Shown here piece by piece: positions 2,047 to 58,789 of a stretch of 64,000 nt of DNA. The notes below the pieces were generated by a model. That model was given only the letters and a program-made list of their open reading frames with translations. It did no database searches and was not told the origin of the DNA. This DNA is from Podarcis bocagei. Its lineage: Eukaryota. The stretch is from the NCBI GenBank assembly GCA_964188305.1, contig OZ076888.1. One strand, 5' to 3'. The position numbers and the translations under genes are program-made. Within the stretch, counting starts at the first letter, position 1; the number at the start of each line of letters is the position of its first letter.

Positions 2047-3624
2047 AACAACATATTGAGCCAACTACTAAATAGCACCAATTGACTCTTTCCTGCTGAG
2101 TTCTTCTCATCTTGTTAATATTCTCCCATTTGTTCTGTTAATTAAGGCAGATTGGTTTCTATATTTATTACCTCTAGGTGGCAGCAGGGATCAAACCAAG
2201 GTACACTGTTTTCCCCTGCTGGTAAAACTACCCTGTTCAAATTCAGCGATGGAGATTTGGCAGCAATTTGCAGAGCTGCTTGTAGAAAAGGTCTGTGGCG
2301 GATGTATGGACTGCATCCATAGAATCGGATTGCTCCCAACCGTTGCTTTTATTGCACATAGTGGTACCTTTCTCATCACTCAGCTTACATGGGCATCCAG
2401 CAGGAATGAAACAATTTTAGACATTTTGCTTCTAACTAACAGAGCCCGCCATATTGCAATGACAAGATGGCGTGTTAGATTCATGTTGTTATCCAGACTT
2501 GCCACTCAAAAGCATGGCTGCAAATGGATTCACGATATTGATTGTATTGCAGATGGGTTCCAAGACGATATGGATTCCGAGAGCTGTTTTACACATTACA
2601 TTTTCCTATTTGCAGATAATCCTTGAGTGAGTGGTGGGAGAGAGAAAAGAAACTCTTCAGACATCTGTCATGCTCGGATGCTTGCGCATTGACTTTGTCA
2701 GTGGGTGGTTTGACTCAGGGAATAAATGAGGAAAGTTAAAAAAGTGTACTGGAGAATCTCCAAACTCCTGATTCTGGTTTCTTCCTCAACCTCTATACAG
2801 TGCGTGGAAATTGACGACGTCAGTTCCTGAGCAGCCTCCATTCTTACTGGTTTTATTTCTCAGCGAAACTTTAAAAGAGAGAGGGGGAAATATGCACTTG
2901 ACTGAAAGGAGCACTTCTAGATTTGGGTGAAGAAAAGGGAGACAATGGGCATGAAGCCGTCAAGTGATTCTAATTGTGAAATGAAATTCAAATCTGTGAA
3001 AAAATGCATGGGATTGGGCCACACGTCTGCACACTTAACAGGGAAATCCTATAAATGCCTTTTCAGAAATAAGCCTTTAGATGAATGGTCTTACTGCTCT
3101 GCAATTGTGAACTTAATTTCCTTCTGATTAAACATGCATAGTATTGCGTGGCACAACAAAGAGAAACACAGGTAAAGGTAAAAAAGCAACAACGTTTAAC
3201 TATCATCCACAGTTTAGTCTTCACCAAGCGTGAAAAAAGTAAACGGAGTGAACAAATCTGAGTGAAAAATTCACACTGAATAATTTACCCATCTATTTAT
3301 GAATTAATTGGTTGCAAGATACCTTGTGATTTATTTATTTTTTGCAGTTTAATTTTACATCACAACGATCAGTGATATGAATCCCTCTGCATATCCTGCC
3401 AAGCAGTGACTTATTTGACTGTTCCTATTGTGATCCGCAGGATAATTTTAGAACCCCATTTATCCCATTGGCTTCATTCATCAGATTAGCACACTCAGAT
3501 ACATGCCTACTGGTATAATATCTGAGGGCGAATGATACATGGATGCCTATATCAGGGATTTTTGGCAGAGTGTCTAATGTGCTAGGCAAATTTTGCTCCA
3601 TTCTTCACCTTCTCATTTACAATT

Positions 3625-4025
3625 CATAGGAAGCTGCCCTATACAGAGTCAGACCATTGGCCAATTTAGTATTTCCTATATCGACTGGCAATGGCCCTCA
3701 CAGGATTTCAGGTGGTGTTTTCTCCCAGGCCTATCTGCAGATGCTAGGGATACAGTGGTACCTTGGGTTAAGTACTTAATTCGTTCTGGAGGTCTGTTCT
3801 TAACCTGAAACTGTTCTTAACCTGAAGCACCACTTTAGCTAGTGGGGCCTCCTGCTGCCACCACGCTGCCAGAGCACGATTTCTGTTCTCATCCTGAAGC
3901 AAAGTTCTTAACCCGAGGTACTATTTCTGGGTTAGCGGAGTCTGTAACCTGAAGCGTATGTAACCTGAGGTACCACCGTAGAACCTGGGACCTTCTGCAG
4001 GCAAACTACCACTGAGCTATGGCTC
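3625..4025 (-). mobile_element. tRNA-headed SINE interrupted by a Tc1/mariner MITE
   Basis: CATAGGAAGCTGCC..AGTCAGACCATTGG tail (recurs near 12475, 24220, 33660, 36434); head GAACCTGGGACCTTCTGC..CTACCACTGAGCTATGGC resumes after the MITE. Confidence 0.65.
3753..3978. mobile_element. Tc1/mariner (Tigger-like) MITE
   Basis: TIR CAGTGGTACCT..AGGTACCACCG flanked by TA on both sides; inverted copy of 5676-5893. Confidence 0.9.
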
Positions 4026-5614
4026 TTGGCCCTTGAGTGGGAGCCACCAGGAACCAAGCAAACCTCTGTGTAGCAGTGTCCAGTCATCTCACATGGATGG
4101 ATCCACTCTAGATTCAGTTTCTTGGTCATGACAGCATGTGACAAAGAGCCCAGAAGCTGGTTCTTATTGAGATATTATCATGTTGATCCTGTGATCAGCA
4201 AGGCATGCAGAAATCTTGGATCACCAGATAAGATGGATTTTCAGCACAATCCTAACCATGCAGACATAGAGATAAGCCCTAATGAATTCAGCAGCGCTTA
4301 ACATCTGAGTAGGCATGGTTGGGAGTGCACTGTTATTATGGAACAATGTGGTGCAGGCTGGCCAAGAAAGAATGACCGTCTCATAGACTTGAATGTAAAC
4401 AAGGGTCTCTAGGATGACACTTACCCTGTGCCATGATATCTGTTGCCTTCTGGCATTGCAAGAGATTGGGGGGGGGGGGAGAAAACCCAGGTTCCCTATT
4501 CCCACCCATCCTTTTTTTTGCTCGTGTTATATAATCATTTGAACGAAATCACCCTTGCATGAAAGCTGGAAGAACCTGTCTATTTGGGGCCTGCAGAACA
4601 GACTTTTGACATACTCCAGACATCCAGCCAAATAGATGTTTAGGAGGGATTTAGTCCAGAGGCATCAGCCTCAAGCTCATGTTCAAAGTTGTGTGAGCTG
4701 CATAGTGTGTATATCTGTTCTCAGTTACGCCGGAGTGAACTTGGCTGGCAGAGTGCCACTGCCTTCAGTAATCTCCCCCGTCTCTGAAGCTTTAGATCAG
4801 AACACATGCCTTGTCCTCCGACGAATAGCATGTCTTCAATTACCTCTCAGGGCTTTGATGCACCTTGGCCTTGGCATTGCTTTGAAGCATTTTCCTCCTC
4901 TCACTGCTCAGGCGTAGCTCCCATTAGTGTTTCCAGGGAGCAGTAAAACTGTAGTGCTTGCAAGAAAATTGCTGGTTTGAAGAATTAAATGAAAGAAGAC
5001 CACATCTTTGCTTTACTTTTCCTAGCAAGGAGATTCATGAGGCAGACAGGTGAGTAGATGGAAACTCGCAGTCTTTTTATCACATTGATGGCTTGAATGG
5101 ATTTTGTTTCTTGGAGTATCTTTTAAGACTTTAATTAAATCAGGAGACGCGCTCTCCTCCAACCAGCCGCCCGCTGCTTATCTGCCTCTTAGGGCCTTGA
5201 TTCATTACGCTGTATTATTTTTCTCTCTCTCCATCCCAGAGTAATCTTTAAAGACCGCAAATGGAAAGACTAAACTTTCAAGGAATAAGCTAAGAAATAA
5301 ACATAGGCATTGTTGTTTTCGTGCAGATGTTTGCAGGCTCGTGTTGGATGATCCCCCAAACAAGATGTCGCTCAGGGTGAGCCATTGCTGCTTCCGCTCC
5401 TTTTCCAAAGCACCCTTTCTAAGAGCACCTCTGACAGTTTTGGTTCTCTGCCACAATCTGGACCACATTCTGCTTTGTAATAAAATCTGACAATGGGAGG
5501 GGGAAGGGCTGCTTTAGGTCGTCCTTAGACACTGCAGTTGCTTGAGAGGCAGGAGAAGATATTTTTCTCTGCAAAGTGGCAGAGAACGTGCCATGTAATA
5601 CTTGTTTTCTGTTC

Positions 5615-6125
5615 ATAATAAATACAAACTTTGGAATTCCCTGCCTATTTACACCATGCAGGTGCCTTCACTGTACAGTGGTACCTCGGGTTACAGACGC
5701 TTCAGGTTACAGACTCTGCTAATCCAGAAATCATACCTCGGGTTAAGAACTTTGCTTCAGGATGAGAACAGAAATCGCACGGTGGCAGCAGTGGGAGGTC
5801 CCATTAGCTAAAGTGGTACCTCAGGTTAAGAACAGTTTCAGGTTAAGAACGGACCTCCAGAACAAATTAAGTTCTTAACCCGAGGTACCACTGTATTTCC
5901 CTCCTGGCACTTGCTAAAAAGCATCTTTGTTTAGGCAAGCCTATCTACATGCATAAAATCTTGAGATGTGTTGTCATCTGGTTTTTAGCTTATTGTTGAT
6001 TTTAAATTTTTTTTAAAAAGTTTTAAATAGTTACTTTTAGCTATTATGACTGATAATTTTATTGTTTTATTCTTTTTGCAAACTGCTTCGAGGTTTACAA
6101 TCAAGTGGTATATAAATCTTGTGAA
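5615..6125 (+). mobile_element. Degenerate L2 3' end interrupted by a MITE
   Basis: KLWNSLP motif (AAACTTTGGAATTCCCTGCC) before the MITE, L2-like terminus after it, followed by a (GATA)n run. Confidence 0.55.
5676..5893. mobile_element. Tc1/mariner (Tigger-like) MITE
   Basis: TA|CAGTGGTACCTCGGGTTA...TAACCCGAGGTACCACTG|TA: perfect TIR and TA TSD. Confidence 0.92.
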
Positions 6126-6499
6126 ATAGATAGATGATAGATAGATAGATAGATAGATAGGGGGGAGTTTGCTCTGAAATCCAAGTTGGCTCTGGAGTCT
6201 GCATGAATCTATTTATGTATTACATCAACTCCTGAGTTCCACATGTGGCCACAGAGGCATAATATCAGAGATCAGAGATCTTCAGTTTGTAGCTCATTGC
6301 ATGCCTCGTGGGATATTGCACTGTGGCTCTGCTCCCTTTAATTGCTTCAGGGGAAATTGGCCAAAAACCACCGAGTCCCAACTTGGGTTAAAATAAAGCA
6401 GTTTGTTTAAATGCATAGCCAAAATGGCAGTCCACAGAATAAAGTGTTTTGGTGGCTTGAAGCGCTGAAGGCAATGTTAAACGATAATATGACGGTCTG

Positions 6500-6860
6500 T
6501 TGCTGGTTGCCTTCCTGTGCACACGTCCCAGCTTGTCCATATCCTTCTTAAAACGTGGTGCCCTGAACCAGACACAGTGGTCCAGTTGTGGTCTGGCCAA
6601 GGCAGAATAAAGTGGTACTATTAATTCCCTGGATCTGGACACTATGATTTCTGTTGATGCCAGTGGCGTAGCGTGGGTTGTCAGCACCCGGGGCAAGGCA
6701 AGTAATTTGCGCTCCCTAACCCGTGGATTTGCGCTCCCTAACCCGTGGATTTGTGCCCCCTAACCCTAACCCCCAGATGCTGCGCCCGGTGCGGCCGGCC
6801 CCCCCTGCACCCCCCACGCTACGCCACTGGTTGATGCAGCCTAGAATTACATTAGTTTCC
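6500..6860 (-). mobile_element. CR1 LINE ORF2 fragment interrupted by a hAT MITE
   Basis: Translation [45 protein letters not shown] is homologous to the CR1 ORF at 28.8 kb. Confidence 0.85.
6661..6829 (+). mobile_element. hAT-type MITE with CCCTAA motifs, copy 1 (169 bp)
   Basis: 17-bp TIR CAGTGGCGTAGCGTGGG; perfect 8-bp TSD GTTGATGC (6653-6660, 6830-6837). Confidence 0.95.
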
Positions 6861-9099
6861 CTTCTAACTCTGAGTCCTGGACCTCATTTCCTTGAAGAAG
6901 GGGGAGCTGACCTCAGGGCATCTTGTCCATGCCCCCTGCTGCCAAAATAATAATAATCAGGATCTGAGAGTGTGCCTGTATGTACTCCCCCTAAATCTCC
7001 CCATCCCTTTGCTCATTCCTTCTGTCTCTTCTCACAGCATTCAGCCCATTGCTCCATGTACTTAAACTCCTTCTCCAGTTCGGCACTCATTTATTTATAG
7101 GCAGTATATTTGTGATCTATAAAGTGTAAGTACATCCCTAACCCATCCAATCATGCTTCATCACTGCAAAGAAGTCTCTGGTTGGTGCATTGCTGACCCT
7201 TGAGAAGTGCCACTCAACTCGACTTCTTTGTTTCTCTGCCTCCCCCCCCCCAACCCCCTGGTAAGATGCTACCTAATAAATTTCTTGCAGTGGAAAGGAA
7301 GAAGTATCTAATCTTTCTGCTCACTAGATTTAGTTACACCATTAGCTGGATCTTTCTCATAAAAGTAATTTTTTAATTTGTAAATGTATCTGAGTGGTTT
7401 TTATAGAAGACTGTCAGGAAATGATAAAATGCCATCAACAGATTTATATAAAAGGGATTTAGTGTTGGCTATCCTCCCTCTCCTTTCTGCAATCCCTGCC
7501 ATTGTGAGCTGGAGCTGTTCGTAGCTAAAACATGTCCAGAGAGCAAGAGTTCCAGGGCCAGCACTCAGGCCTTTAATTTTACTTTTACAAGACAGGTTTA
7601 CAATGTCAAGAAGGATGGGAGAGCTGGAAGCGCTGTCTGCTTCGCTCTGGTCCATGTTCTGCTTCGGATCACACCCAAACAACAAGAGGCAGAAAAACAA
7701 GATGAAGGTCCTTTTTGAAAAGCTTCAGGAAACAAACCCATCTTTTAAATTCAGGAGTGGCAGGGAAAAAGTGGCCCAGCTGTTCTGTGCTAGCATCATG
7801 CAACGTGATCTGGGATAATGAGAGAAGTTTGGTAGAAAATTCTCGAAGATACAGCAGGCTTGGCAGTTGTATGTTTATTAACAAAAAGGGTTTTCTATAT
7901 AAGATAAAACAAAAGCCAAGAGGTCTTTGAGATGGTACTGTAGCATCTTTCTCCCTCAAAATCAGCATTCATTTAAGCAGCACAGGACACTTTCCTTGCA
8001 TAATTTCCCATTGTCTAAAAAAAGTTAACCATTGTGCACCAAAAAAGCGCCAATGAACAGAGGCTTCTTTCCAAATTCTCCATGTATATCCATCTAATAA
8101 GTATTGTTTCCATCCTCAGTGTGTCAAATCCTGGTGTTGGAAGCTGAACTAGTTGTGCCTTATGTCGTGATTTCCTTGCCAGCTTTGCCAGCGTGAATGT
8201 CTCAGTGTTATCAGCCTGTCTCAGTAAAAACTGCCTTTGATTATGGATGGTGCTTTTAAATAACTGGCCTTCTCTTTAGTAAAGAAAACAAGCAGCTATC
8301 AGGAAAGGAGAATCTGATCACTGCAGAGGTCATATGCACCCTGCGTGCCCATGAGTGTTGCTATTTAAACTTGGGCATTTTTATAGCGAAGTTCAAAAAG
8401 CAAGTGTGAGTTGGAGTGCAAGTGCAGGCCTCAGGTTCCATACTTTCAACAGGATTATTAATTGCATATCATAACATTTGCCTTCCATGTAATAGCATCC
8501 CTTGGCTAACACTGACCCCAGGAGAAACATTTGTTTCTTTCTCCACAAAACATTGCTCCGTTTTCTTCTCCAAACCCTTCATTTCAATGTATTTTGTCAC
8601 TGGGGGACACTTCCTATTTCAATTTTCCTGATGCAGAAAGTAAATTACACCTGAAACCTGCAGGGGTGATAATCATCTGTTGATTGCTAGGAGGCAGCAC
8701 AGGAACCATGCATACTTGCAGCAAATCACACATGTATAGGTTAGTCACACGTGATGGTCGACGAGCCACCTTCACAGATTTACCTTCCCGTGGCAAAACT
8801 CCCAACTCACGATCCAGCCTTGATTGCTCTGCATTTCATGGCCATTTCAGACTGCTTTAATTCTGGGAATTGGGATCTATTTTAATGCTTCCAATTTCCA
8901 CCACCGAGATATGTGGGCTACTCCAGCTTCCACTGATCCCTGCGCCTCAAAGGGTCTGTCATGGGTTGGGTAAGTGTCTACAGCTGGCTTCCCATGCTTA
9001 CTACAGAGTGTCCTAGAGGGACAGTACGCTGTGAACACCTGACAGGGTGTCCGTAGACGAGGGTGAAAATAATGTTCTCTGCTGCCTGGTGGGCAGGAG

Positions 9100-9270
9100 T
9101 TGACCCAGTGGGCTTAAGTTATAGGGAGGTAGAGTCTGGTTGAATATTAGGAGGGACTTCTCAATGGTAAGAGAAATTCAACAGTGGAAGTGATGCCCTA
9201 GAGGGCTGTTGTGGTCTCCTTCACTGGAGGTCTTCAGGCAAAGGCTGGACAAATTATAATGGAGATACTC
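9100..9270 (+). mobile_element. Old CR1 3' fragment
   Basis: Diverged match to the CR1 3' region at 29140-29300 (TGAATATTAGGAGGGACTTCTC; TCTCCTTCACTGGAGGTCTTCAGGCAAAGGCTGGAC). Confidence 0.7.
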
Positions 9271-10277
9271 CAGCTCTTATCCTGTTCTGCGGTTCTCCCA
9301 GGACAAGGCAACACACAGAATCAGCTAAGGATCTTTAAGCAGATCAGGACCCTAGACAGCTCCTAGTGGGCCCTGCCCACTAAAGTTTGGAAGATGCTGT
9401 CTCACCCAGGATAATAATGTGCGTGGCCTTGGGTACTATGGCTATACACCTTGACTTGAGGTGGGATGGGATGTCATTTGCTGCTCCACCTCAAGAAGCA
9501 AAACATCTTGGGTTGGCCCTGAATTTTGCTCTCATTTTGGTCATGACTTGAGCCCAGGATGTGCTGTAGGTTTCTCTGGAATATACTTGAAGTTTGACAC
9601 TCTCACAAATGCAGCCTGGAAAGCTTTCTGATAATCAGGGGTGGGAAGGGAGAAAGTCAAGAGGACATCATTTGTAAAAGGGCTCTGGATGAGAAATGAA
9701 TATCCTTTCTCCTGACTTGCTATCTCCTTGGGCTTGTTCAGATTGCTCCCTTGCATTATGTCTCCCAGTCAACCAGCCGGAATCTCTGCTATTATCTCCA
9801 GTCTTCACCATTTGTATAACTGACACTGTTTCCCTATCCCTCCCCACTCATCTGGAATGAGGACACTAAAGCCCTGAGATCCAATTTATTGACAAGAAAT
9901 CCCTGTATTGTCTGTGGCTGGGAGGTAGTGGAAACACATTCCTGCTAGTTAAGAGGACTTTTACAGCTTCAGAGTCTGGGGAGAGAAGTTGCCAGTCATT
10001 ACCTGTTGTCTTAAAAGATGGGCTCCCATTTGGCTAGGTTCCTGAAATATCACTGTTTGTAAGAAAGAGTAAGAAGAAGTGGACCCTGCAACAGAACAAG
10101 AGGGCTCATGTTCAGATTTCCAGAACTATTGAGTATCTTCATGTCTACTGCAGCAGGCAATTTTTGTTTCTTGCTAATGAGATCTTGACATTCCTCCCCC
10201 TTGGGAAAAAATAACCTGCTTACGAAAAAACGTGCTACTAAGAAAAAAATACCCACATCTTCACACAGCATCAGCAC

Positions 10278-10415
10278 CAGATGTGGGAAACCTTAGGTGA
10301 TCCAGATGTCACTAAACTACAGTTCCCATCAGCCTCAGCAGGCACGGGCCAATCACCAGGGATGGTGGATGTTTCAGGCTAGCAACATCTGGAGGAACAA
10401 AGGTTCCTCACATCA
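10278..10415. mobile_element. Palindromic ~135-bp MITE (ACTACAACTCCCATC family)
   Basis: CCAGATG..ACTACAGTTCCCATC..CATCTGGAGG hairpin architecture. Confidence 0.7.
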
Positions 10416-12534
10416 GATCTACGCAAACTGGAGGAAAGCTATTTTTTAAAATAGATTTTTTTTTTACAGCAGCTGAGCAACCATTTCCCCTCCCCTATTC
10501 ATAATGCTTTATTTGCCACTATTGAAACCATTGGTTAGACAGGCTGTTGTTCATAGCTCCTCCAGGCAACTAACCTATGCACACTTTTGAGGTTTTTAAA
10601 GACTTGCAGATGCCAGTCTCAGAAGCAACACCTGTTGAACCCAGCCAGGTGGTCCACCTGGGGTGTGGGAAGCTGGCTCCTTTCTTGCGTGAGCAACATT
10701 TTTCTGGGTCCAAAGAGTTAGCGGTGACCTACATACACGCCCAATTATAAAGCACACATCACTTCACAAGCTAGAAACCGGTGGATTGGGCTTGGAGTGG
10801 TAATATGCCAAGATGAAAAATGGCCAACGGAGCATTTTTTCGAGAGAATGTCAGACCCTGGAGAGTTCAACTGATGTGGGAGTACTACTAGGGAGTTCAC
10901 AGGAGAAATGCTGTCATATTAAGCCAAGTGCCTATTTATTTGCCATCAAAGTGAAGGATGTGGCTGGTTTGGTGGTAAAGCAAAAGCAACCTGCCCTATA
11001 TATTGAAAGGGCCCAATATTAAGAAATAGGAAAGTGTGAGACTGGCTCTATGGGGTTTCAAAGCTATTTTACTCTCCTTGTCTAGCAGGGAATTGAAATT
11101 ATCGTAAAAGATTCATTGGATGCAGATGTTTCACCTTTAACATCTGCCCTCTGACACTTCCATTTCTCATTGATAGACAATGCTCCAGAGAGTGTTTCTG
11201 TTGAAATATTTGGTCAATTAGCCTAGGATAACTATATCTATCAATCTACCACACTGAGTTCTAAAAAAAAATTCTGGAAGGAGAAAAAGCGACAAGATAT
11301 TTTTGGGCAATGTGGGTTGTATTCAACAAAACCATCCCATTTGCACAAGGATTTTTGCTTGTGCAACAGAACTTCTTCTCCCCTGTACTTTCCCTGTGTG
11401 AACCCCAAATCTATTCTGGGGGTTCCCCCAAAACCTCTGGAACTGGATTTTGGCTGTGTGTGGGGTGCATGGGGATCAGAGAGGGAGAGGACGTTTTGTT
11501 GCATAAGTGAAGTTCCTTGAGCAAACAGGACAGTTTCACTGGATGCAACAAGTCCTTAGTTTGATTTATGAAATGTCATTGGCCTCACCTGTTTTGCATA
11601 GGTCTTCTCCCATTGTATCAGCCACTAGGCTATCCAAGATCAAATTCAGAAGTCTTCATAATTCCATAGTTTAACTAAGCACTGACTGAATGAGTGCTTT
11701 CTTTGGTCTGCCCCGTATCCTTCTGTGCCTCCCTCCTAGCTCTTTGCACATCTGGACAGAAGCAGGAGCATCCATGGGCCTAGCTCTACCACTGAACCAA
11801 GGCCAATGGGATTTATTGGTATAACTCATGTCAACAGAGCTGCTGTAATTCTGAGACTCTGGCAAATAGCACAATTTTTTATTTATTTTAAAAAATGTCA
11901 ATTGATCTGCTTTAGAGTTTTACAAAGAGAGGAGTGTTGGGCAGCAGCTGTTGCTGCCTCCACTGTAGGGTTAGTCTAAAACAGGATCAAATATGTTTCC
12001 TGCCATAGCTGCCGCTCACATGCCATTTGTCTTCCTAAACCATAAACCTTCTATTATAGACAATGAGTGAAGAAAGATGTAACACCAAAGGGAAATCAGA
12101 GCAGGTCCCCTCTACCTTCCCAATTCACATGGTAATTGTGGATCCCATCAAGCTGAAATCTGGGTCAGTTACATCACACTTCAGGTGAACTGTCCATCTT
12201 TAAACAAAGCATTTAAGTGTCTGACTTATATCTTACTCTTTCAGTGTTTTTAATGGGATGCATTTTCAAAACAGTGGTCAAACTGCTCCAGGTTTTCGAG
12301 TGGCGGGTGAAAGGAGGAAAATGGCTTTCGTGATACCAGGGTTGTTGTTGTTTTGCTGCAAATGTGCTGAGCTGGCTTTCGCTATGGTGTGGGAAAAGGC
12401 ACATTTGGATTGAATGTGGCATGAGCACTTCCCAAAGCCCCAGCTTTGCATGAACGCTAAATTAAAGGGACAAAGGAAGCTGCCTTGGTCCCAGTCAGAC
12501 CACCAATCTTAGTATCCATTTACTGACTGGCAGC

Positions 12535-12887: not shown

Positions 12888-13125
12888 AGCCAGTGTGGTG
12901 TAGTGGTTAGGAGCGGTAGATTCGTAATCTGGGGAACCGAGTTCGCATCGCCGCTCCTCCACATGCAGCTGCTGGGTGACCTTGGGCTAGTCACACTTCT
13001 CTTAGCCTCCCTCACCTCACAGAGTGTTTGTTGTGGGGGAGGAGGGGAAAGGAGAATGTTAGCCACTTTGAGACTCCTCAGGCTAGTGATAAATTAGCGG
13101 GATATCAAATCCAAACTCTTCTTCT
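12888..13125 (+). mobile_element. Squam3-like CORE-SINE
   Basis: tRNA head AGCCAGTGTGGTGTAGTGG, CORE-like GCTGGGTGACCTTGGGCTAGTCAC, (CTT)n tail; near-identical to the reverse copy at 27853-28107. Confidence 0.85.
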
Positions 13126-13151
13126 CCTTGGGGATCCCAGGGATTGAACCT

Positions 13152-13490
13152 CAGACCCTCCAAGTGTCCCTATTTTCCAGGGACATCCCTGTTTTAGAGA
13201 AGCCATCCCGGTTTCTGACTTGATCCCAGAATGTCCTGCTTTTCCTTAGGATGTCCCTATTTCCACTGGAGAAATGTTGGGGGTTATGGAGTTATCCAAC
13301 CCCCGAGCTGTCTGAAGGCAATCCTGTATAGGGAAGTTTTTAAAAAATGTTTAATGTTTTATTATGTTTTTATATATGTTGGAAGTTGCCCAGAGTGCTG
13401 GGGCAACCCAATAAGATGTGTAAAATAGTAAAATTATCATTATGGAATGGGACGTACCTATTTTTATTGGAGGAATGTTGGAGGGTATGG
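13152..13490. mobile_element. hAT (Blackjack-like) non-autonomous element containing an L2 tail fragment
   Basis: ACCCTCCAAG..TTGGAGGGTATG inverted ends, repeated TGTCCC motifs; L2 3'UTR piece at about 13325-13440. Confidence 0.55.
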
Positions 13491-14431
13491 AACCTGGGAC
13501 CTTGTGCGTGCAAGCATGTGCTGTATCTACCACAGAGTTACAGCTTAAAAACCCTTGAAAACGGAACTGCTGGGCAAAGAACCAGGCCTACCAGACTCCC
13601 CTCTAAATTAGCCTTTGTTGAGGTACAGTTGTGCAGTTATCGTTCCTGTGATAACCAGGGAGGCTTTGGATCGTATTTTAACAAGCTTTTATTGTAAGCT
13701 GCTCAGCAAATTATGGGTCAGCCCATAAATGGCAGGAACAGATAAATAATGCAGTAACTGGTCTCTTAACGCCCGCCATGCCTGACCTCCTGACCATTAT
13801 TGTTGAACAGCAAAGGAGCTTCCTGGTTAACGGAAAGGAGAGTTTAGCGGAGGCAACTGCAAACTCACAAAACACGGCACTCTTTAGCTAAAAGCCAAGA
13901 AGTCCTCTTCTTTCTCCCAGCCCCCACCTTCGCCATACCTCCACTCTGTACTCCCCTTAAACACTTGTGCTAATTAGTTAAATCAATCACCCTGGAAATC
14001 ATCATTCCCTCTCTTAACTTCTCCCCCAGCCACCCACCCCCAAGCCCCAGGCAGGCCATCCATCTTAGCTTCCCTCTTTGCCAACGCTTCCCAGAGCCAG
14101 CAGGAGCCTCATGATTGAATTCAGCCTTTATCGCCCAAAGAATGCCCCGAGGGATCAGAGAGATGAAGGGGGCCAAGGGGGCCCTGTTGAATGTCATTGC
14201 TGTGCTCCATTCCCATGTAAGCACAGCTGGTTTAATGAGGGTGCTTATGGGCTGGGTCCTTTGCCTTGGTCAGCGGTAAGGGATAATTGCTTGCAATGGC
14301 AATGTGCCCACCTCCTGTAATGGGACAAAGCCGAGCAGCTCCTTCTGTACAAGGCTAAAGGCAAATAGGAATCAAATAGAATGACTGTATATATATGCAA
14401 GAACATCAGCAGAGGTTCTGTCCCAGGTACA

Positions 14432-14761
14432 GGTAAAGGTAAAGGGACCTCTGACCATTAGGTCCAGTCGTTGCCGACTCTGGGGTCACAGTGCTCATCT
14501 CGCTTTATTGGCCGAAGGAGCTGGCGTACAGCTTCTGGGTCATGTGGCGAACCAGAGCAGCACACGGAAACGCCGTTTACCTTCCCGCCAGAGCGGTACC
14601 TATTTATCTACTTGCACTTTGACGTGCTTTCGAACTGCTAGGTTGGCAGGAGCAGGGACCGAGCAACAGGAGCTCACCCCGTTGTGGGGATTCGAACCAC
14701 CAACCTTCTGATCAGCAAGTCCTAGGCTCTGTGGTTTAACCCACAGCACCACCCACGTCCC
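14432..14761 (-). mobile_element. Sauria SINE, full length
   Basis: (AAAGGT)n reverse tail, B-box GATTCGAACC, head ending CACCACCCACGTCCC; TSD TCTGTCCCAGGTACA / TCTGTTCCAGATACA (13/15). Confidence 0.92.
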
Positions 14762-14954
14762 TCTGTTCCAGATACACATGCATAAAAGGGTGACAGGGAT
14801 TGCCATCACGGAGAGGGCCTTTTCAGTGACGGTGTCCTGATTATGGAATGCTGGTGCCAGCAAGACTCACTCGGTGGTGCCTACATTCAGATCCTTTTGG
14901 CACCAGGTATGGACTGTCCTATCCTGCCAGATCCTTTGGGATCATGCTCTAGAG

Positions 14955-15072
14955 CAATGTTTTCCAAACTTGGGTCTCCAGCTGTTTTCAACCGTGACCA
15001 CTGGTTCTCCTAGCATGGGATGATGGGAGTTGTAGTCCAATAACAGCTGGAGATCCAAGTTTGGGAGCCTTG
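14955..15072. mobile_element. Palindromic MITE (ACTACAACTCCCATC family)
   Basis: CCAAACTTGGGTCTCCAGCTG..CAGCTGGAGATCCAAGTTTGG; flanks CTCTAGAG / CTCTAGAA. Confidence 0.8.
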
Positions 15073-15440
15073 CTCTAGAACCAGTTGAGGCTGATCTATT
15101 AGGGCAAATGGGGCAATGCCCCAACAGTTCCACTCCGCCCTTAGCCAGCCCCCACCTGCCTGCCTTCCTGCTTACAACCAGGCTGGTGGGTAGCACCAGC
15201 TATAACCTTCCTTCTCCTCAGTCTCAGTCTTGCCTTTGTAGAATACGATGGGGGCAAAAAGAGTAAACTCTGCCTGTTCCTGGATCTGGCTCCATTTATG
15301 GTTAGCCTCTCTGTCTTCTGTCCTACCAGTTCCAGGGCTTGCGCACACTTCTGCCATTTCCCCTAGGGAAACCCACTGCTTACCACTGAATCTGAACAAT
15401 CCAGTTTTTCTGCAGATTGACGTTTGTTCAAATTCAGTGG

Positions 15441-54320: not shown

Positions 54321-55079
54321 AATTTTGCCGCAATCTGCATAATTTTACTCCTGTGGCATTTGTGCTGCCCTTTGGTTTGGTTCTTTTGTCAAGAACCCCA
54401 GGGTTATTTTCCTGAGTAAAAATGGCTGCTTTTAATTCCTGCACCTTACTGCATGCTTCCCTCCACCATTGTTAGACTAAAAACCCAGCAAGCCACCAAG
54501 CAGGGAAACCTAATGCCTTCCAGATGTTATGGACTAGAACTCCCATCATCTCTGATCAGTCATAAGGTTGGGGCTGCTCGACCCAGTGTTGGGGAAGGCC
54601 GGGTCCTCAAATTTCCCAGTTTACCAAAGTGGAAGTATAAGCAGGATATATTTTTCAAAGAAAGCAGACCGTCGGAAAGATTTTTTTCCTCAGGCATTTC
54701 TTGCTTCCCTCCCCCACCCACTTGCCAGAGGCTCAGTTTGTCTCGCAAAGTGGTGTCATTATGAATGCATCAGGCAATATCACACATGCAGCCTTCATTT
54801 AGCCTTCCAAGCTCAATTACATCTGAGGATGTCTTGGGGTAATTAAGTAATATTAGAACCTTGTCTTTGGCCATCTTTTTTTTTTATAATGTAGTTTTCA
54901 GTGTGTTAAGCCTCATGCGCTCACCCAATCACAGCCAGCTTGGAGTTTGTGAACCTCTAATGCACTTTTGCCATGAATGAGGGCTAATTGCATTTCTGAG
55001 AGATGTCATTAGTGGCAAATTCGTGCTGGCTTTCAAGAGTTAGCACACGGCAAGAAATGTTCCCTCAGGCAACTAGCAA

Positions 55080-55124
<45 letters not shown>

Positions 55125-55128
<4 letters not shown>

Positions 55129-55267
55129 CTTTCGTACAGGAATGTAGGTTTTGGTGTCTTCGGGTGTCTTCCCGTGTAAGAGTTGGGGTGTCTAGGCGAC
55201 GTTTCGACGAGGTCTCACTCGTCATCTTCAGGCTGGTGCTTTCGGCTTCTTGTTACTAGAACAGAGC
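55125..55267 (-). mobile_element. Penelope-like element terminal-repeat fragment inside (TA)n
   Basis: CpG-rich 143-bp insert between two (TA)n tracts, containing the CTGAAGATG..CGAAACGTC motif typical of Penelope pLTRs. Confidence 0.75.
55193..55236 (-). ncRNA. Minimal type I hammerhead ribozyme motif
   Basis: CUGAAGA-U-GACGAG(UGAGAC)CUCGUC-GAAA-CG-UC: conserved core, perfect 6-bp stem II, palindromic ACGU stem III; stem I only 2-3 bp. Confidence 0.7.
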
Positions 55268-55763
55268 TATATATATATATATATATATAATGGGTGTTGT
55301 GGGGGTGGGATTGCAGAGACAGACTTTTTGGTAAATAGGCTGAGAAGAAGCTAAGAGCTGGATGTAATTGTCAGTTAATCATTTGGGAAAGGGGAGTGTA
55401 CCTATCTGACATCAGTGCAACTCTGGGATGTTATAGCCAGCATGATTGCTGCTTTTTCTTTTTCTCCAACATGGTATCCTCCTCATCAACCTTAGTCAAC
55501 ATGACCATGCTGTTCCAGTCCACTCCCGACTTATTTGGGATTCACAGAGACTCAGGAGTTAAGGCTGCCTATCAAGGTTCTTGGAGTGACTATATTAGGA
55601 TCTTGGGAGGCCAGACACACCACCCTTTTGGATCCCGGTAGTTATTGTTGAGCAGTGGCCACAGCAGGGATGGGAAATGGAGGCTTCTCTTGGGCCTCTT
55701 GCTCTGCTTGTTGCTGCTGTTAATTCCTGAGCTAGCAAACAGAGGGCTAGCTACTACGCCGGT

Positions 55764-55911
55764 AAACAAATATTGGTAAATATGTTTTCTCTACCTTGAA
55801 AGTAGTAGTAGTAGAAATCCCTACTCAAATGCATACCTACTCAAATGCATACAAGGCCTTGTGTCTAATAAGGAGGCCGGCATGTCAGAAGCGAGACGCT
55901 CTGTCAACGTA
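55764..55911 (+). repeat. Discontinuous duplication of the downstream flank 57491-57825
   Basis: 55764-55810 = 57491-57537; 55817-55831 = 57566-57580; 55845-55911 = 57758-57825. Confidence 0.95.
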
Positions 55912-56435
55912 AGGTCAATTTTCTGGTCCAAGTTTGAGGCCTGGCTGTTCTCTGCGGCATACACTATAGCCTTCTTTGGTGCCTTTAGGGTTGGTGAGGT
56001 GGTAGCAGAAGCTACCTCAAGTGGAACAACGCGCAGCCTCTTCCTGGAGGACGTGCAGGTGTCCAGCTCAGGCGGGATGGTGCGGGTGCATCAGTCTAAG
56101 ACGGACCAGGGCGGTAAGGGCACCATAGTCCAACTCATGGCCTCCGGCCAGAAGGGCCCACACCCAGTAAAGGACACCAGGCGATACCTTTACCTTAGAC
56201 CTCCCGGCCCTGGCCCGCTCTTTACTCACGAGGATGGATCCCGATTGATGAGGCACCAGTTCACCAGGGTACTTCGCAAAGCTATAGATGCCTGCCGTTT
56301 CCCTTCCAAAGACTACACAGCACATTCATTTAGGATTGGTGCGGCCACAAGGCCGCACACATGGGCCTCCCGGCAGACAGGAGCAAAGAGATGGGCCACT
56401 GGAAATCTAATACCTACAAAAGTTGCATCCGATAG
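55912..56435 (+). pseudogene. Tyrosine recombinase catalytic domain (disrupted)
   Basis: AFFGAFRVGE (box I Arg), SKTDQ (Lys), HSFRIGAAT (HxxR); frameshift near 56350, then MGHWKSNTYKSCIR* with Cys where the YIR tyrosine is expected. Confidence 0.92.
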
Positions 56436-56481
56436 TATTCTGAGAACGCTCTGCTTACCCGTCTTTTCTTTTCTTTCTTTA

Positions 56482-57061
56482 GTCTTAGCTGTCTCGGTAG
56501 TCAAGTGTGGATTTGTGGCCACAGTATCGTGCATTGGGCCCGCCTATGGACAGCAAGTTTTGGCTTCGTGCCTCACCTGGGCTACCATCGTGGGTGCGAG
56601 TTTCCTGGTTTTCAAGAAGGGGCATGCGCTGGCAAGAACTCATGCCACTGCTGAAGGCAAAAGCTGTGCTGTTGGGCCCCCCTAACATTCTAATCATTCA
56701 GCTGGGGGAGAACGACCTGGCTAGCAGGAAGAGTGTGGACTTGTTGTGGAACATGAGAAAGGTCTTGGACGAGTTGGCTGCCTTATTTCCCAGAACAATC
56801 CTGTTCTGGTCCTCTCTTCTGAAGAGAAAGGTTTGGCGCGGTGCGCATAACATTATGGCCATCGAGAAATCCAGGAAACTCTTGAATCGCGCGGTAGCGC
56901 GCAAAGTGCGTTTTATGAATGGCCTAGTTATATCTCATGATGATATCCAGATTGGTGACCAGACCCTATTCCGGGATGATGGCGTTCATCTTTCAGATCA
57001 GAGAAATGACATATGGCTGGCTAACATATCCAATAGTCTTAGGGATTGGTTGCAGCTGTGA
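56482..57061 (+). pseudogene. SGNH/GDSL hydrolase-like ORF (one frameshift)
   Basis: VWICGHSIVHWA (block I, in the 55861 +1 register), RRGM (II), LGENDL (III), DDGVHLS (V). Confidence 0.85.
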
Positions 57062-58220
57062 GGGTATTGGCGACGAGCCTTTTGGCTCGGGTGGCAGTTA
57101 GGCATTGGAATGTGTTGTTGGTGTTTCGGGGGGCAAGGTGTGGCCATTGCCTTCCCCAACAATTTGGGTATTCCGCTAAAGGAATCCGGCGGTCGTGGAT
57201 CCTGTCCGATGCCCGTGTGGCGGGGGGCCATGGCACGATCCTCGGTGACATCAGGAGAGAGCCTATAGTTGGATTAGCATCAACAGGCTCCCCCTCCTGG
57301 TGGTTAACCCCTCCTCAGACTCACCCCTCTTCGAGTGGGTGGAGTCTAATGTTCCGTGGTCCAATGCCTAAGCCAATACCTTCTCACATGCTGTAAACAA
57401 TAAAGTTGTGGCCTTTACCTTACCCATTAACCTTACATTCTGTGTCCACGTGTCTTTATTCCCCAAGCGAGGATCGGGTCCTCGAATCACAAACAAATAT
57501 TGGTAAATACATTTTCTCTACCTTGAAAGTAGTAGTATGTGCAAAGCAAACAGGTTTTTAATGATATCCCTACTCAAATGTCTCTTGGAGGAAGCTCTTC
57601 AAGACTGGTGGAAACTCATACATGCTGAGAAGCCTGAATGAGGTATCAGGACCAGAGCAGAAATAAGAGAGAGTAGTTTGGGGTGTATGCATACTGTCAG
57701 GTTAGCAGGGATTATGCTTCTCTCTGAAATGTTGGCCTCAGAACTCTTGAGGTGGGTATGCATACAAGGGCCTTGTGTCTAATAAGGAGGCCGGCATGTC
57801 AGAAGCGAGACGCTCTGTCAACGTAGGAAGTGCGCACACTGTAAACTCACCTCACACTTGACTCCAGTCACACCTCGCTTTAATGAGCACTTTTGTTTCT
57901 GACCCATTTTATCATCTTTTGGCATTGATGCTGTAACATCCTTGCAGGAAGAAGAGGACTGTGAAAAGTTCTTTGGCGTATCCTTCCTTTTAGATTTGTC
58001 TTTTTAAAAGAAAAGAAAAAATATTGGCACCATGTTTACCACATTTATAAGCAGAAAGCTTGGAAAGGAAAGATCCAGCTGACTTAAAGATGCAATGAAA
58101 TGCTTTTGTGAAGAAGTCTTACTCTTTATTTCTTTAAAGGGTTTAAAGATCAGCTGGGCTTCACATAATTATAACTATATTCAGAAAAGGACAAGGTTTC
58201 TGTCCCTTCAAGAGCTCCTC

Positions 58221-58466
58221 TGTTAAGTTGTGGGTGAACATATCAGACGACACAGCGTTTCTTCAAACAGCTCTTGTTTATTCACAGGCCAGGACAGAAC
58301 TGAACTGAAGGGTTCAGTCAGCCTGCTTATATAGAACTCCAGTACAATGTAACTGTAACAACTTTCTAAAACTATCCAATCACTGAACCCACTTTTGATC
58401 CCTTATTTGCATAACTATCTACGGTATCCCCCTGCTGGCCCAGGGTGAGAACTTCAGTACATAACA
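58221..58466 (-). mobile_element. Solo LTR (246 bp)
   Basis: TGTTA..TAACA termini; on the minus strand octamer, CCAAT, TATATAA and AATAAA in U3-R-U5 order; TSD imperfect (TCCTC / CCCAC). Confidence 0.8.
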
Positions 58467-58789
58467 CCCACGGAAGCAGAAGTTCAGTAAGTGGAACCGT
58501 GTGGCCTCAGGGCGGGCAAATTCTTTCCTGAAGCAGCACAGAGTCGCTACTAGACAGTGCGGACATTACTGAGCTAGATGGATCAACCCCTCAGAGCAGC
58601 CTGGGTGGGGGAAGAGAAGGGAGATTATTCTGTCTGCCAAGCAGAAATGTTTCTGCTGAGAGAACCATCATAATAGTTTGACACTGAATTCCCTCCACAG
58701 GTTTTTATCTATTTGACATTTTCTATTAATATTAAAGCATTCACCATCACGTTAAACCTAGTCACCAAAATATCTGCTCTAATATAGAA

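Follow-up and report, generated by a model that had tools for sequence, protein, structure and literature searches.

A 5′-truncated Ngaro copy in a lacertid genome with a left junction patched from neighbouring host DNA

For tyrosine-recombinase retrotransposons, integration is held to proceed from a circular form and to leave the target unduplicated. To our knowledge, there is almost no experimental knowledge of how the Ngaro elements among them integrate. DIRS-type integration leaves no target duplication (PMC3266345), and the cDNA of DIRS-1 is mostly linear and single-stranded (PMC7192593). Outside this class, a linear group II intron can have one end attached and the other closed by end joining with copied nucleotides (PMC3280974), and Pol theta produces templated insertions of complex structure when SDSA has been aborted, with mean insert sizes of 4-13 nt (PMC2895639).

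Here we describe a locus in a stretch of 64 kb (the window, analysed over its full length; all features below lie on its plus strand) at which a member of the Ngaro family has been inserted in a non-canonical manner, with a right end of canonical appearance and a left end that the host assembled from its own DNA close by. As the empty site is kept in three related species, the locus provides a dated and polarised case.

The element and its right junction

The element copy occupies positions 55912-57492. Over this span it is homologous to 12 relatives found in Podarcis muralis and Zootoca, which together with the window copy make up a comparison set of 13. Judged from the sequences of these relatives, it is an Ngaro: they show A1...B1-A2-B2 split repeats and carry RT/RH, YR and SGNH genes (in L009 at 6595-8040, 7930-8935 and 9077-9575, respectively), in the gene order of the Ngaro elements of PMC9210276. 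Their split repeats are nearly or fully identical, at 100% in L004 (A of 226 nt, B1=B2 of 365 nt), 99-99.7% in L010, and 100% and 99.7% in L012, and the A repeat of the family is GC-rich with conserved palindromes.

The window copy begins in mid-YR and is without A1, A2 and B2, so that a single B region (57097-57492), ending in ...GGTCCTCGAATCACAA at the terminus common to all copies, is the only one of the split repeats that it has kept. Its tyrosine-recombinase fragment (55912-56450) starts just 5′ of the Arg box AFFGAFRVGE and carries a 1-nt frameshift near 56350, behind which paralogues have one extra C, leaving the C-terminal Tyr region out of frame. A Pfam search with this fragment alone returned no match; it aligns with the YR ORFs of the related copies, which match 'integrase/recombinase xerD homolog' proteins with PF00589. 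The SGNH/GDSL hydrolase ORF that follows (56507-57061, 184 aa) is open and 93% identical to that of a P. muralis copy; it matches PF13472 with an E value of 1e-4, under the curated cut-off, and the same domain is present in the relatives. Comparison of an ORF in the left flank with proteins called on public contigs yielded no candidate for an outgroup sequence at 57510-11, and no further copy of the element was found within the 64-kb window. The 3′ region of the element has a very high copy number, for which Rfam and tRNA scans, empty over 54900-58700, gave no explanation.

All 12 related copies end at one base, equivalent to 57492 in the window, and the right junction of the window copy lies at exactly this terminal base (...CACAA), abutting a target AA. 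The two bases at 57491-57492 are shared by the element terminus and the target (GGT/AAACAAAT), and could be either a core or a microhomology. The window target reads GGTAA/ACAAAT, and an AA core stands before A1 in every canonical copy (ACAA, GCAA or AGAA; ACAAA in L010, ACAA in L004 and L003), although an overlap as short as this could be chance (about 1 in 10). On the basis of these sequences, the right junction looks canonical, like one made by the recombinase or from a natural end, and we lean, with some reserve, towards such an origin over pure capture by microhomology. The preliminary description of this locus had proposed an entry independent of the recombinase, with repeated microhomology-driven template switching. 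The anatomy of the left junction supports the switching, whereas recombinase-free entry is unsupported because the right junction sits at the exact terminus on the canonical AA core.

The left side is where the window copy departs from integration free of target duplication, to which its canonical relatives conform. In L004, L003, L007, L008, L002 and L010, a left flank ending in AA stands beside A1, without target duplication. A1 lies directly left of the body in six copies of the group L001-L004 and L006-L008, that is, all but L001, in which only an A1-like stretch is seen about 3.5 kb upstream of the start of body homology; no flank duplication was found at L001, L002, L003, L004, L006, L007 or L008. 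In the window copy, 148 nt of target are repeated at the left.

Anatomy and host origin of the left junction

The left host flank, X (55300-55763), has ...GCCGGT as its last bases, and in the empty allele 57491 follows it directly. The right host flank, Y (57491-57825), is the 335-nt template of a patch of 148 nt (55764-55911) that separates X from the element, and all but about 6 nt of this patch maps to Y as ordered blocks with one back-jump. Block A (55764-55810) copies A′ (57491-57537) with 45/47 identical positions, the sole difference being TG (55783-84) against CA (57510-11), and continues X exactly as the empty allele does: the first base of the patch is the first base after X in that allele, with nothing lost or gained. 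The TG and CA of the two A copies may go back to one ancestral CpG, as the preliminary description supposed. A linker, GTAGAA (55811-55816), adds one GTA to a (GTA)n run and then GAA. Block B (55817-55831) is an exact copy of B′ (57566-57580), 25 nt of source having been skipped after A, and stretches to 55814-55831 = 57563-57580 (17/18) if one mismatch is allowed. Block C (55845-55911) copies C′ (57758-57825) after a skip of 177 nt and is identical to it except for a G run shorter by one G. Across the joint between B and C, a 16-nt unit, CTACTCAAATGCATAC, stands twice in tandem (55821-55852; copies at 55821-55836 and 55837-55852), and it reads as a passage from B to C at a shared ATG, a return to B at a shared TAC, and a second passage from B to C at ATG. 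The switch from A to B has no clean microhomology, and that from C to the element falls in an imperfect 8/9 AAC(G/T)TAGG match, with one extra A, that the end of C′ makes with the paralogue-derived element consensus AAACTTAGG. Further copies of A or C are not expected by chance (0 in shuffled sequences), and the 64-kb window contains none of either block. The ordered copying of three blocks from the right flank and the ATG at the joint of B and C, both put forward in the preliminary description, thus agree with the sequence base for base.

Between the duplicates, 2 substitutions and 1 one-base indel are the only differences in the surviving 129 nt or so, against three large rearrangements, all of them in the left copy. 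This imbalance bears on a history in which staggered nicks produced a complete 335-nt target duplication, after which slippage removed 25 and 177 nt from the left copy and added the 16-nt tandem to it. Such a history would account for the start and end bases that both copies share (57491 and 57825), and slippage deletions also use microhomologies such as ATG. However, it has to place three sizeable indels in about 335 nt of left copy while the right copy has stayed collinear with the outgroups; by a rough estimate, 0.3-0.4 indels would be expected, giving P of about 0.005 for at least three. Furthermore, the 16-nt duplication spans the deletion joint of B and C, so that the events would have to be ordered. 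We regard this history as improbable.

The empty site anticipated in the preliminary description was recovered from contigs of three related species, in which 57491 follows immediately on 55763 and A..B..C is present once. In run X5, contig 22 (1812 nt) runs uninterrupted through 55300-55763 and on into 57491-58245, and the same empty site is seen in contig 8 of run X13 and at a joint in run X14. Y lies on the flanks' contig at unique-flank (single-copy) depth in all three runs, as does the whole of 57522-58127, and its divergence between species equals that of the flanks. The stretch 57491-57825 is absent from all 12 related copies. We conclude that A, B and C are host DNA, because of the empty sites, the absence from the 12 copies and the single-copy depth, and not element consensus, as they might have been on the preliminary description's own terms. 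The patch is therefore a DNA-repair scar rather than part of the element, given that related species still carry the empty site.

These data also bear on a reading of A, B and C as the element's own split direct repeat (A1/A2), with the 'empty' alleles as solo-A remnants of recombination between A1 and A2. The topology does resemble the A1-body-B1-A2 arrangement of the canonical copies L004, L010 and L012. Against this, Y has the depth and contig of unique flank, diverges across species as the flanks do, and shows no similarity to the family A repeat; none of the 12 copies (0/12) carries Y after B, and no B2 follows Y. We consider the reading barely credible. The A1/A2 reading of the blocks was dropped because related species have the empty site, the stretch is at single-copy depth, the 12 copies do not carry it and a family A motif is lacking; solo-A remnants were dropped on the same evidence together with the low divergence of the duplicates.

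Read support for the patch comes from short-read contigs, none of which spans it whole, and this leaves room for an error of assembly, in which a repeat would have caused a mis-join or a chimeric consensus. In run X1, an independent sample from the species with the best match to the window, contigs stop at 57801 and resume at 57803, as they should if a 55-nt exact C repeat exists twice, because a 31-mer graph must then branch there. Two contigs of X1, and none of the other runs, fit two places of the stretch, and reads cover 55805-55905 to a depth of 41 in X1, compared with 0, 0.84 and 0.14 in the three empty-site runs. The A copies moreover differ at TG and CA, where a collapsed or copied artefact would show no difference. 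An assembly artefact is thus extremely unlikely, and the duplication is real, as had been suggested from the difference between the A copies. Further X1 contig breaks at 55810 and 57535, both in the (GTA)n run, are unexplained.

Candidate histories of the insertion

By a small margin over even chances, we favour one complex insertion event, which would have taken place in the lineage of the assembled species after its split from the three empty-site species. An incomplete Ngaro DNA or cDNA, lacking A1 and all other sequence upstream of mid-YR, would have been joined by its natural 3′ terminus (...CACAA) to the chromosome at the target AA. As the incoming molecule offered no left end to match, it would have fallen to the host's break repair to close the left chromosomal end, X. 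For this closure, the 3′ end of X may have been extended on the sequence right of the break, with the other break end or an intact sister or homologue as template. It would have copied A (47 nt), dissociated and re-annealed at short or imperfect microhomologies, and then copied B (15-18 nt); a switch via ATG would have led to 5 nt of C, a switch via TAC to B again, and another via ATG to C as far as 57825. Pairing with the truncated end of the element, inside the imperfect AAC(G/T)TAGG microhomology and with one extra A, would have completed the joint. The switching polymerase could have been Pol theta-like, of the BIR type or the element's own RT.

Of the preliminary interpretation, the part that is supported is that the left junction is a product of microhomology-guided, host-templated repair. 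One event is preferred over later decay because the duplicates differ so little when set against the three large rearrangements confined to the left copy. In addition, the 5′ break of the window copy (55912) falls within a 65-nt breakpoint cluster common to L001, L006 and L005, which points to truncation at the cDNA stage rather than a random later break. Two caveats apply, however: this is a lone locus whose steps cannot be dated from sequence alone, and, for Pol theta, inserts with blocks of 47 and 67 nt and a template reach of 335 nt would be unusually long.

The same product could also arise in two steps, if a later break in a canonical copy were repaired off an empty homologue. The recombinase would have inserted an A1-bearing copy canonically between X-AA and Y, and a break within the element in a heterozygote would have left a clipped left end that invaded the empty homologue at X, copied Y with switches and was finally joined to what was left of the element, a combination of aborted SDSA and end joining. 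Under this scheme, the fully canonical right junction is accounted for, the exact continuity of X and Y at 55763/55764 is natural for homologous invasion, and there is precedent for Pol theta end joining after an aborted SDSA (PMC2895639). It nevertheless requires that two rare events struck the same locus in quick succession, because the duplicates differ by only 2 substitutions. Also, a breakpoint in the cluster of three independent copies fits truncation at the cDNA stage better, and an allele with a longer element was not seen in the contigs of four runs, which could miss one. On balance, we think two steps unlikely.

Two of the related copies have a look-alike architecture: L005 (Zootoca, OY735902.1 near 55.17 Mb), with a 77-nt repeat and a GAGAC microhomology, and L009 (P. 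muralis, OZ076956.1 near 68.46 Mb), with repeats of 54 + 179 nt and 127 nt skipped at CAA. Like the window copy, both are without the family A motif and without B2, and the internal breakpoints of all three cluster, together with those of canonical deletion copies, in the 65-nt hot spot in the recombinase gene (55900-55965). The architecture is thus found in 3/13 copies, with host origin proven for the one in the window, and by sequence comparison its sharing by L005 and L009 hints at a recurrent pathway. As a tentative proposal, lacertid Ngaro elements may have a second, recurrent route, in which the rebuilding of the left repeat A1 is done at the target by copying host DNA, yielding 'pseudo split repeats'. 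A1 is normally rebuilt from the sequence 3′ of B, normally A2; were this done at the target, host DNA would be copied instead. If this route is true, the reverse transcription of YR retroelements, or its completion, can occur at the chromosomal target, and if L005 and L009 are also host-templated, it would be a regular alternative mode of integration. Incomplete Ngaro intermediates do reach the chromosome, as the locus shows.

Comparison with known systems

The 5′ joints of LINEs, including those made by template jumping of R2 and L1, combine 5′ truncation with microhomology and occasional extra templated nucleotides, and at LINE insertions the target is duplicated from the 3′ joint onwards. 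The window copy differs in ending with CACAA, without poly(A) or a LINE tail, and in the patchiness of its duplicated target, with 25 + 177 nt missing and one unit iterated. Unlike a LINE, the Ngaro element here presumably encodes no endonuclease.

At the level of the patch, there is a likeness to Pol theta or alternative end joining (PMC2895639, PMC5068794, PMC4032859): the insert is copied from beside the break on serial templates, template re-use gives imperfect or tandem repeats, and short microhomologies stand at switches, in the patch clearly so for those between B and C. The patch is larger than such inserts, however: it totals 148 nt, two of its tracts measure 47 and 67 nt, and its template extends over 335 nt, whereas a typical insert stays below about 30-50 nt; all of its tracts are direct and none is inverted, and the partner in the final joint is a retroelement end. 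MMBIR/FoSTeS (PMC8421209) shares with the patch the ordered forward and backward jumps at microhomologies and tracts of tens of nucleotides, but the patch bears no sign of a replication-fork context and draws on one small template region only. The locus stands as an unusually long, multi-step natural case of template switching guided by microhomology in the germ line of a vertebrate.

The retrohoming of linear group II intron RNA in Drosophila (PMC3280974) resembles the window copy in its division of labour, one end being attached by the element's chemistry and the other by host end joining, and in its 5′ truncations, microhomologies and extra nucleotides from neighbouring sequence. It differs in the class of element, in the chemistry of attachment and in the shortness of the tracts that the intron copies. 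With canonical Ngaro and DIRS elements (PMC3266345, PMC9210276, PMC7192593), the window copy shares the right junction at the exact terminus and a short core common to element and target; but where these have A1 at the left and no target duplication, the window copy has no A1 and, in its place, a partial copy of its own target.

Host origin of the duplicated blocks

The patchwork that the preliminary description reported beside the 5'-truncated Ngaro copy, a tyrosine-recombinase (YR) retrotransposon at 55912-57492, is present in full on sequence comparison. Block A (55764-55810) copies 57491-57537 with 45 of 47 positions identical, the sole difference being TG (55783-84) for CA (57510-11); block B (55817-55831) copies 57566-57580; and block C (55845-55911) copies 57758-57825 minus one G. 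A 16-nt unit, CTACTCAAATGCATAC, occurs in two copies at 55821-55852. No further copies of A or C were found in the 64-kb window, where shuffled sequence leads one to expect none.

Our first guess, that the blocks were the element's own split repeats A1 and A2, was ruled out by 12 related loci and by contigs carrying the empty site. Homology between the window copy and all 12 relatives starts at 55912 and stops at 57492, and none of them contains anything like 55764-55911 or 57491-57825. We aligned public contigs from four read runs to 55300-58300. In organism E (run X5), a single contig of 1812 nt spans 55300-55763 and 57491-58245 with nothing between, which is the empty site that had been predicted, reading ...GCCGGT joined to AAACAAAT.... 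A 1581-nt contig of organism F (X13) has the same joint, as does organism G (X14); with their single A copy placed on the left, it is listed as 55809 to 57539. In these three runs, whose flanks show about 2-4% divergence from the window, depth over 57522-58127 equals unique-flank depth. The flanks of X1, an independent sample of the species that matches the window best, differ from it by 0.3%. Its contigs break at 57801/57803, as expected if a 55-nt exact repeat in C occurs twice, two of them each fit two places, and 55805-55905 is covered at a depth of 41, compared with about 0 in the other runs; across the four runs, no single contig spans the whole patch. Together, the flank-like depth, the empty sites and the X1 signals establish that the right flank (57491-57825) is single-copy host DNA, that the insertion is lineage-specific and that the patch is real in a second individual. 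The same alignments contradict both an element-encoded repeat whose 'empty' alleles would be solo-A copies, which we regard as extremely improbable, and an assembly artefact, for which the chances are just as slight.

X1 contigs are also interrupted at the (GTA)n run at the end of A, stopping at 55810 (plus four unaligned letters) and resuming at 57535, although the assembled sequence contains no 31-nt exact repeat there; microsatellite length polymorphism, heterozygosity or low coverage are possible reasons. A repeat of very high copy number, SINE-like by its depth, begins at about 58220 (58220-58300); all four runs cover it up to tens of thousands of times more deeply than single-copy sequence.

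The TG/CA difference is compatible with two deaminations of one CpG, and an error-prone polymerase that changed CA to TG in tandem would account for it just as well. The duplicates differ by two substitutions and one one-base indel in about 129 aligned nucleotides, and the window diverges from organism E by 2.2%, values that fit an insertion postdating the split from that organism. Duplication of the complete 335 nt followed by decay of the left copy is a distinctly unlikely history, as it needs three sizeable indels in that copy alone at only 2 substitutions per about 129 nt. An ORF in the flank, searched among proteins called on the public contigs, gave no match.

The Ngaro family and possible recurrence of the left-end copy

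We defined the family from the 12 related loci, which come from Podarcis muralis and Zootoca vivipara. Split direct repeats of the classical Ngaro form are seen in three of these (L010, L004 and L012), with A1 = A2 (223-234 nt) and B1 = B2 (359-399 nt), each at 99-100% identity, and the gene order of L009 (CCCH-finger ORF1, RT/RNase H, YR, SGNH) agrees with that described for vertebrate Ngaro (PMC9210276). Conserved palindromes and a high GC content mark the family's A repeat, and all copies share the terminus ...GGTCCTCGAAyCACAA, corresponding to window 57492. Host DNA abutting A1 on the left ends in AA at all canonical copies (ACAA, GCAA, AGAA, ACAAA), mirroring the CAA at the end of B, and no target duplication was found at these copies; on both short core and lack of duplication they match DIRS-type integration (PMC3266345).

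The window copy lacks A1, A2 and B2. From 55912 it encodes the middle and end of the recombinase, which is cut off immediately 5' of the Arg box and carries a frameshift near 56350, and an ORF at 56507-57061 encodes a GDSL/SGNH hydrolase, weakly matched in Pfam and 93% identical to a P. muralis protein. In four lacertid runs, the summed contig depth of its B region (57017-57492) exceeds the single-copy level by factors of hundreds to thousands, compared with only 10-50 for the coding part. Loose contig ends recur at 57039-57042, which suggests an abundant non-autonomous family with an Ngaro 3' end; the region matched no tRNA and no Rfam entry.

Five copies (L002, L003, L006, L007 and L008) carry A1 fused to a variable internal point and B at the end, without A2 or B2. 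Most genomic copies consist of A1, cut at variable points, an internally deleted body and B. Such forms are consistent with template switching in reverse transcription or B1 x B2 recombination. At L011, an 8.4-kb segment with an Ngaro copy (2868-11315), with CCGAG on either side, is missing from a paralogous duplicate of its flanks at 12982-15415 of the same locus. This duplicate serves as the 'empty site' of a larger composite insertion.

Two of the 12 relatives, L005 and L009, share the architecture of the window copy: a 5'-truncated body, no B2, and on the left a partial copy of the sequence found to the right of the B terminus, starting exactly at the core and without the family A motif. 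In L005 (Zootoca), 6102-6178 matches 7708-7784 at 97% and joins mid-YR at a GAGAC microhomology. In L009 (P. muralis), 5142-5195 matches 10009-10062 and 5193-5371 matches 10190-10368, the left copy omitting 127 nt at a CAA; the body opens with the CCCH finger and, compared with L010 and L011, is missing at least 800 nt of ORF1. The left repeats of L005 and L009 may be diverged A repeats. Should they prove host-templated, roughly a quarter of the sampled copies would have taken the host-copy route, and the rule would be that the left end copies whatever lies 3' of B, normally A2 and sometimes the target.

A stretch of about 65 nt just 5' of the Arg box (window 55900-55965; L001:7705-7707, L006:7030-7038, L005:6172-6179) contains four independent internal breakpoints: the window truncation, the edge of an internal deletion in L001, and the fusions in L006 (to A1) and L005. 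This stretch is a possible hot spot of RT pausing or template switching.

Structure and origin of the two junctions

The left edge of the patch is no junction: the left host flank, to 55763, continues into A exactly as in the empty allele. After the 47 nt of A come GTA, one further unit of the (GTA)n run, and GAA (55814-31 matches 57563-80 at 17 of 18 positions), then B (15-18 nt), CATAC, the first 5 nt of C, entered after ATG, CTACTCAAATG, an 11-nt second use of B entered after TAC, and C, re-entered after ATG and copied to 57825. The ATG at the B-to-C joint is the microhomology noted earlier, and the jump back from C to B shares TAC. One extra A separates C from the element, at a joint lying inside imperfect microhomology between host AACGTAGG and element consensus (L001 and L002) AACTTAGG. 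On the right, where the host flank resumes at 57491, element CACAA and target AA overlap by two bases, or three if the template was a B/A junction.

It is robust that the left junction was made by a polymerase that copied the right host flank as a series of at least five tracts, with re-annealing at short microhomologies. Equally robust is the canonical nature of the right junction, in both its terminus and its kind of core. The pairing of a templated left with a canonical right junction leads us to favour, by a modest degree, a single half-canonical event. An incomplete linear Ngaro intermediate would have attached at its natural B terminus, via recombinase or natural end; DIRS-1 cDNA is mostly linear and single-stranded (PMC7192593). 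The left chromosomal end, lacking an element partner, would have been extended on the right flank, offered by the other break end or by a sister or homologue, in repeated rounds of synthesis, dissociation and re-annealing, and at last joined to the truncated element end. Of the recombinase-independent entry with template switching proposed in the preliminary description, the host-templated template-switch scar on the left is retained, whereas the right junction argues against recombinase-free entry.

A two-step history, in which a canonical insertion was later broken within the element and repaired off an empty homologue, yields an identical product and accounts equally well for the perfect continuity from left to right flank. 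We consider it rather unlikely, as three independent breakpoints (L001 near 55900, L006 near 55931 and L005 near 55958-65) are no more than 65 nt from 55912, and such clustering suggests truncation at the cDNA stage.

Relation to known repair scars

We found no earlier description of a host-templated repair scar in this element class in the literature searched or known to us, and the locus is a variant of known repair-scar phenomena that is new in this class. The left junction shares its logic with the complex templated insertions of end joining after aborted SDSA (PMC2895639, PMC5068794) and with MMBIR (PMC8421209). For Pol theta acting alone, the tracts of 47 and 67 nt and the reach of 335 nt are long; the element's own reverse transcriptase is a candidate polymerase. 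A further parallel is offered by the retrohoming of linear group II introns, in which the element attaches one end and host end joining, with copied nucleotides, closes the other (PMC3280974).
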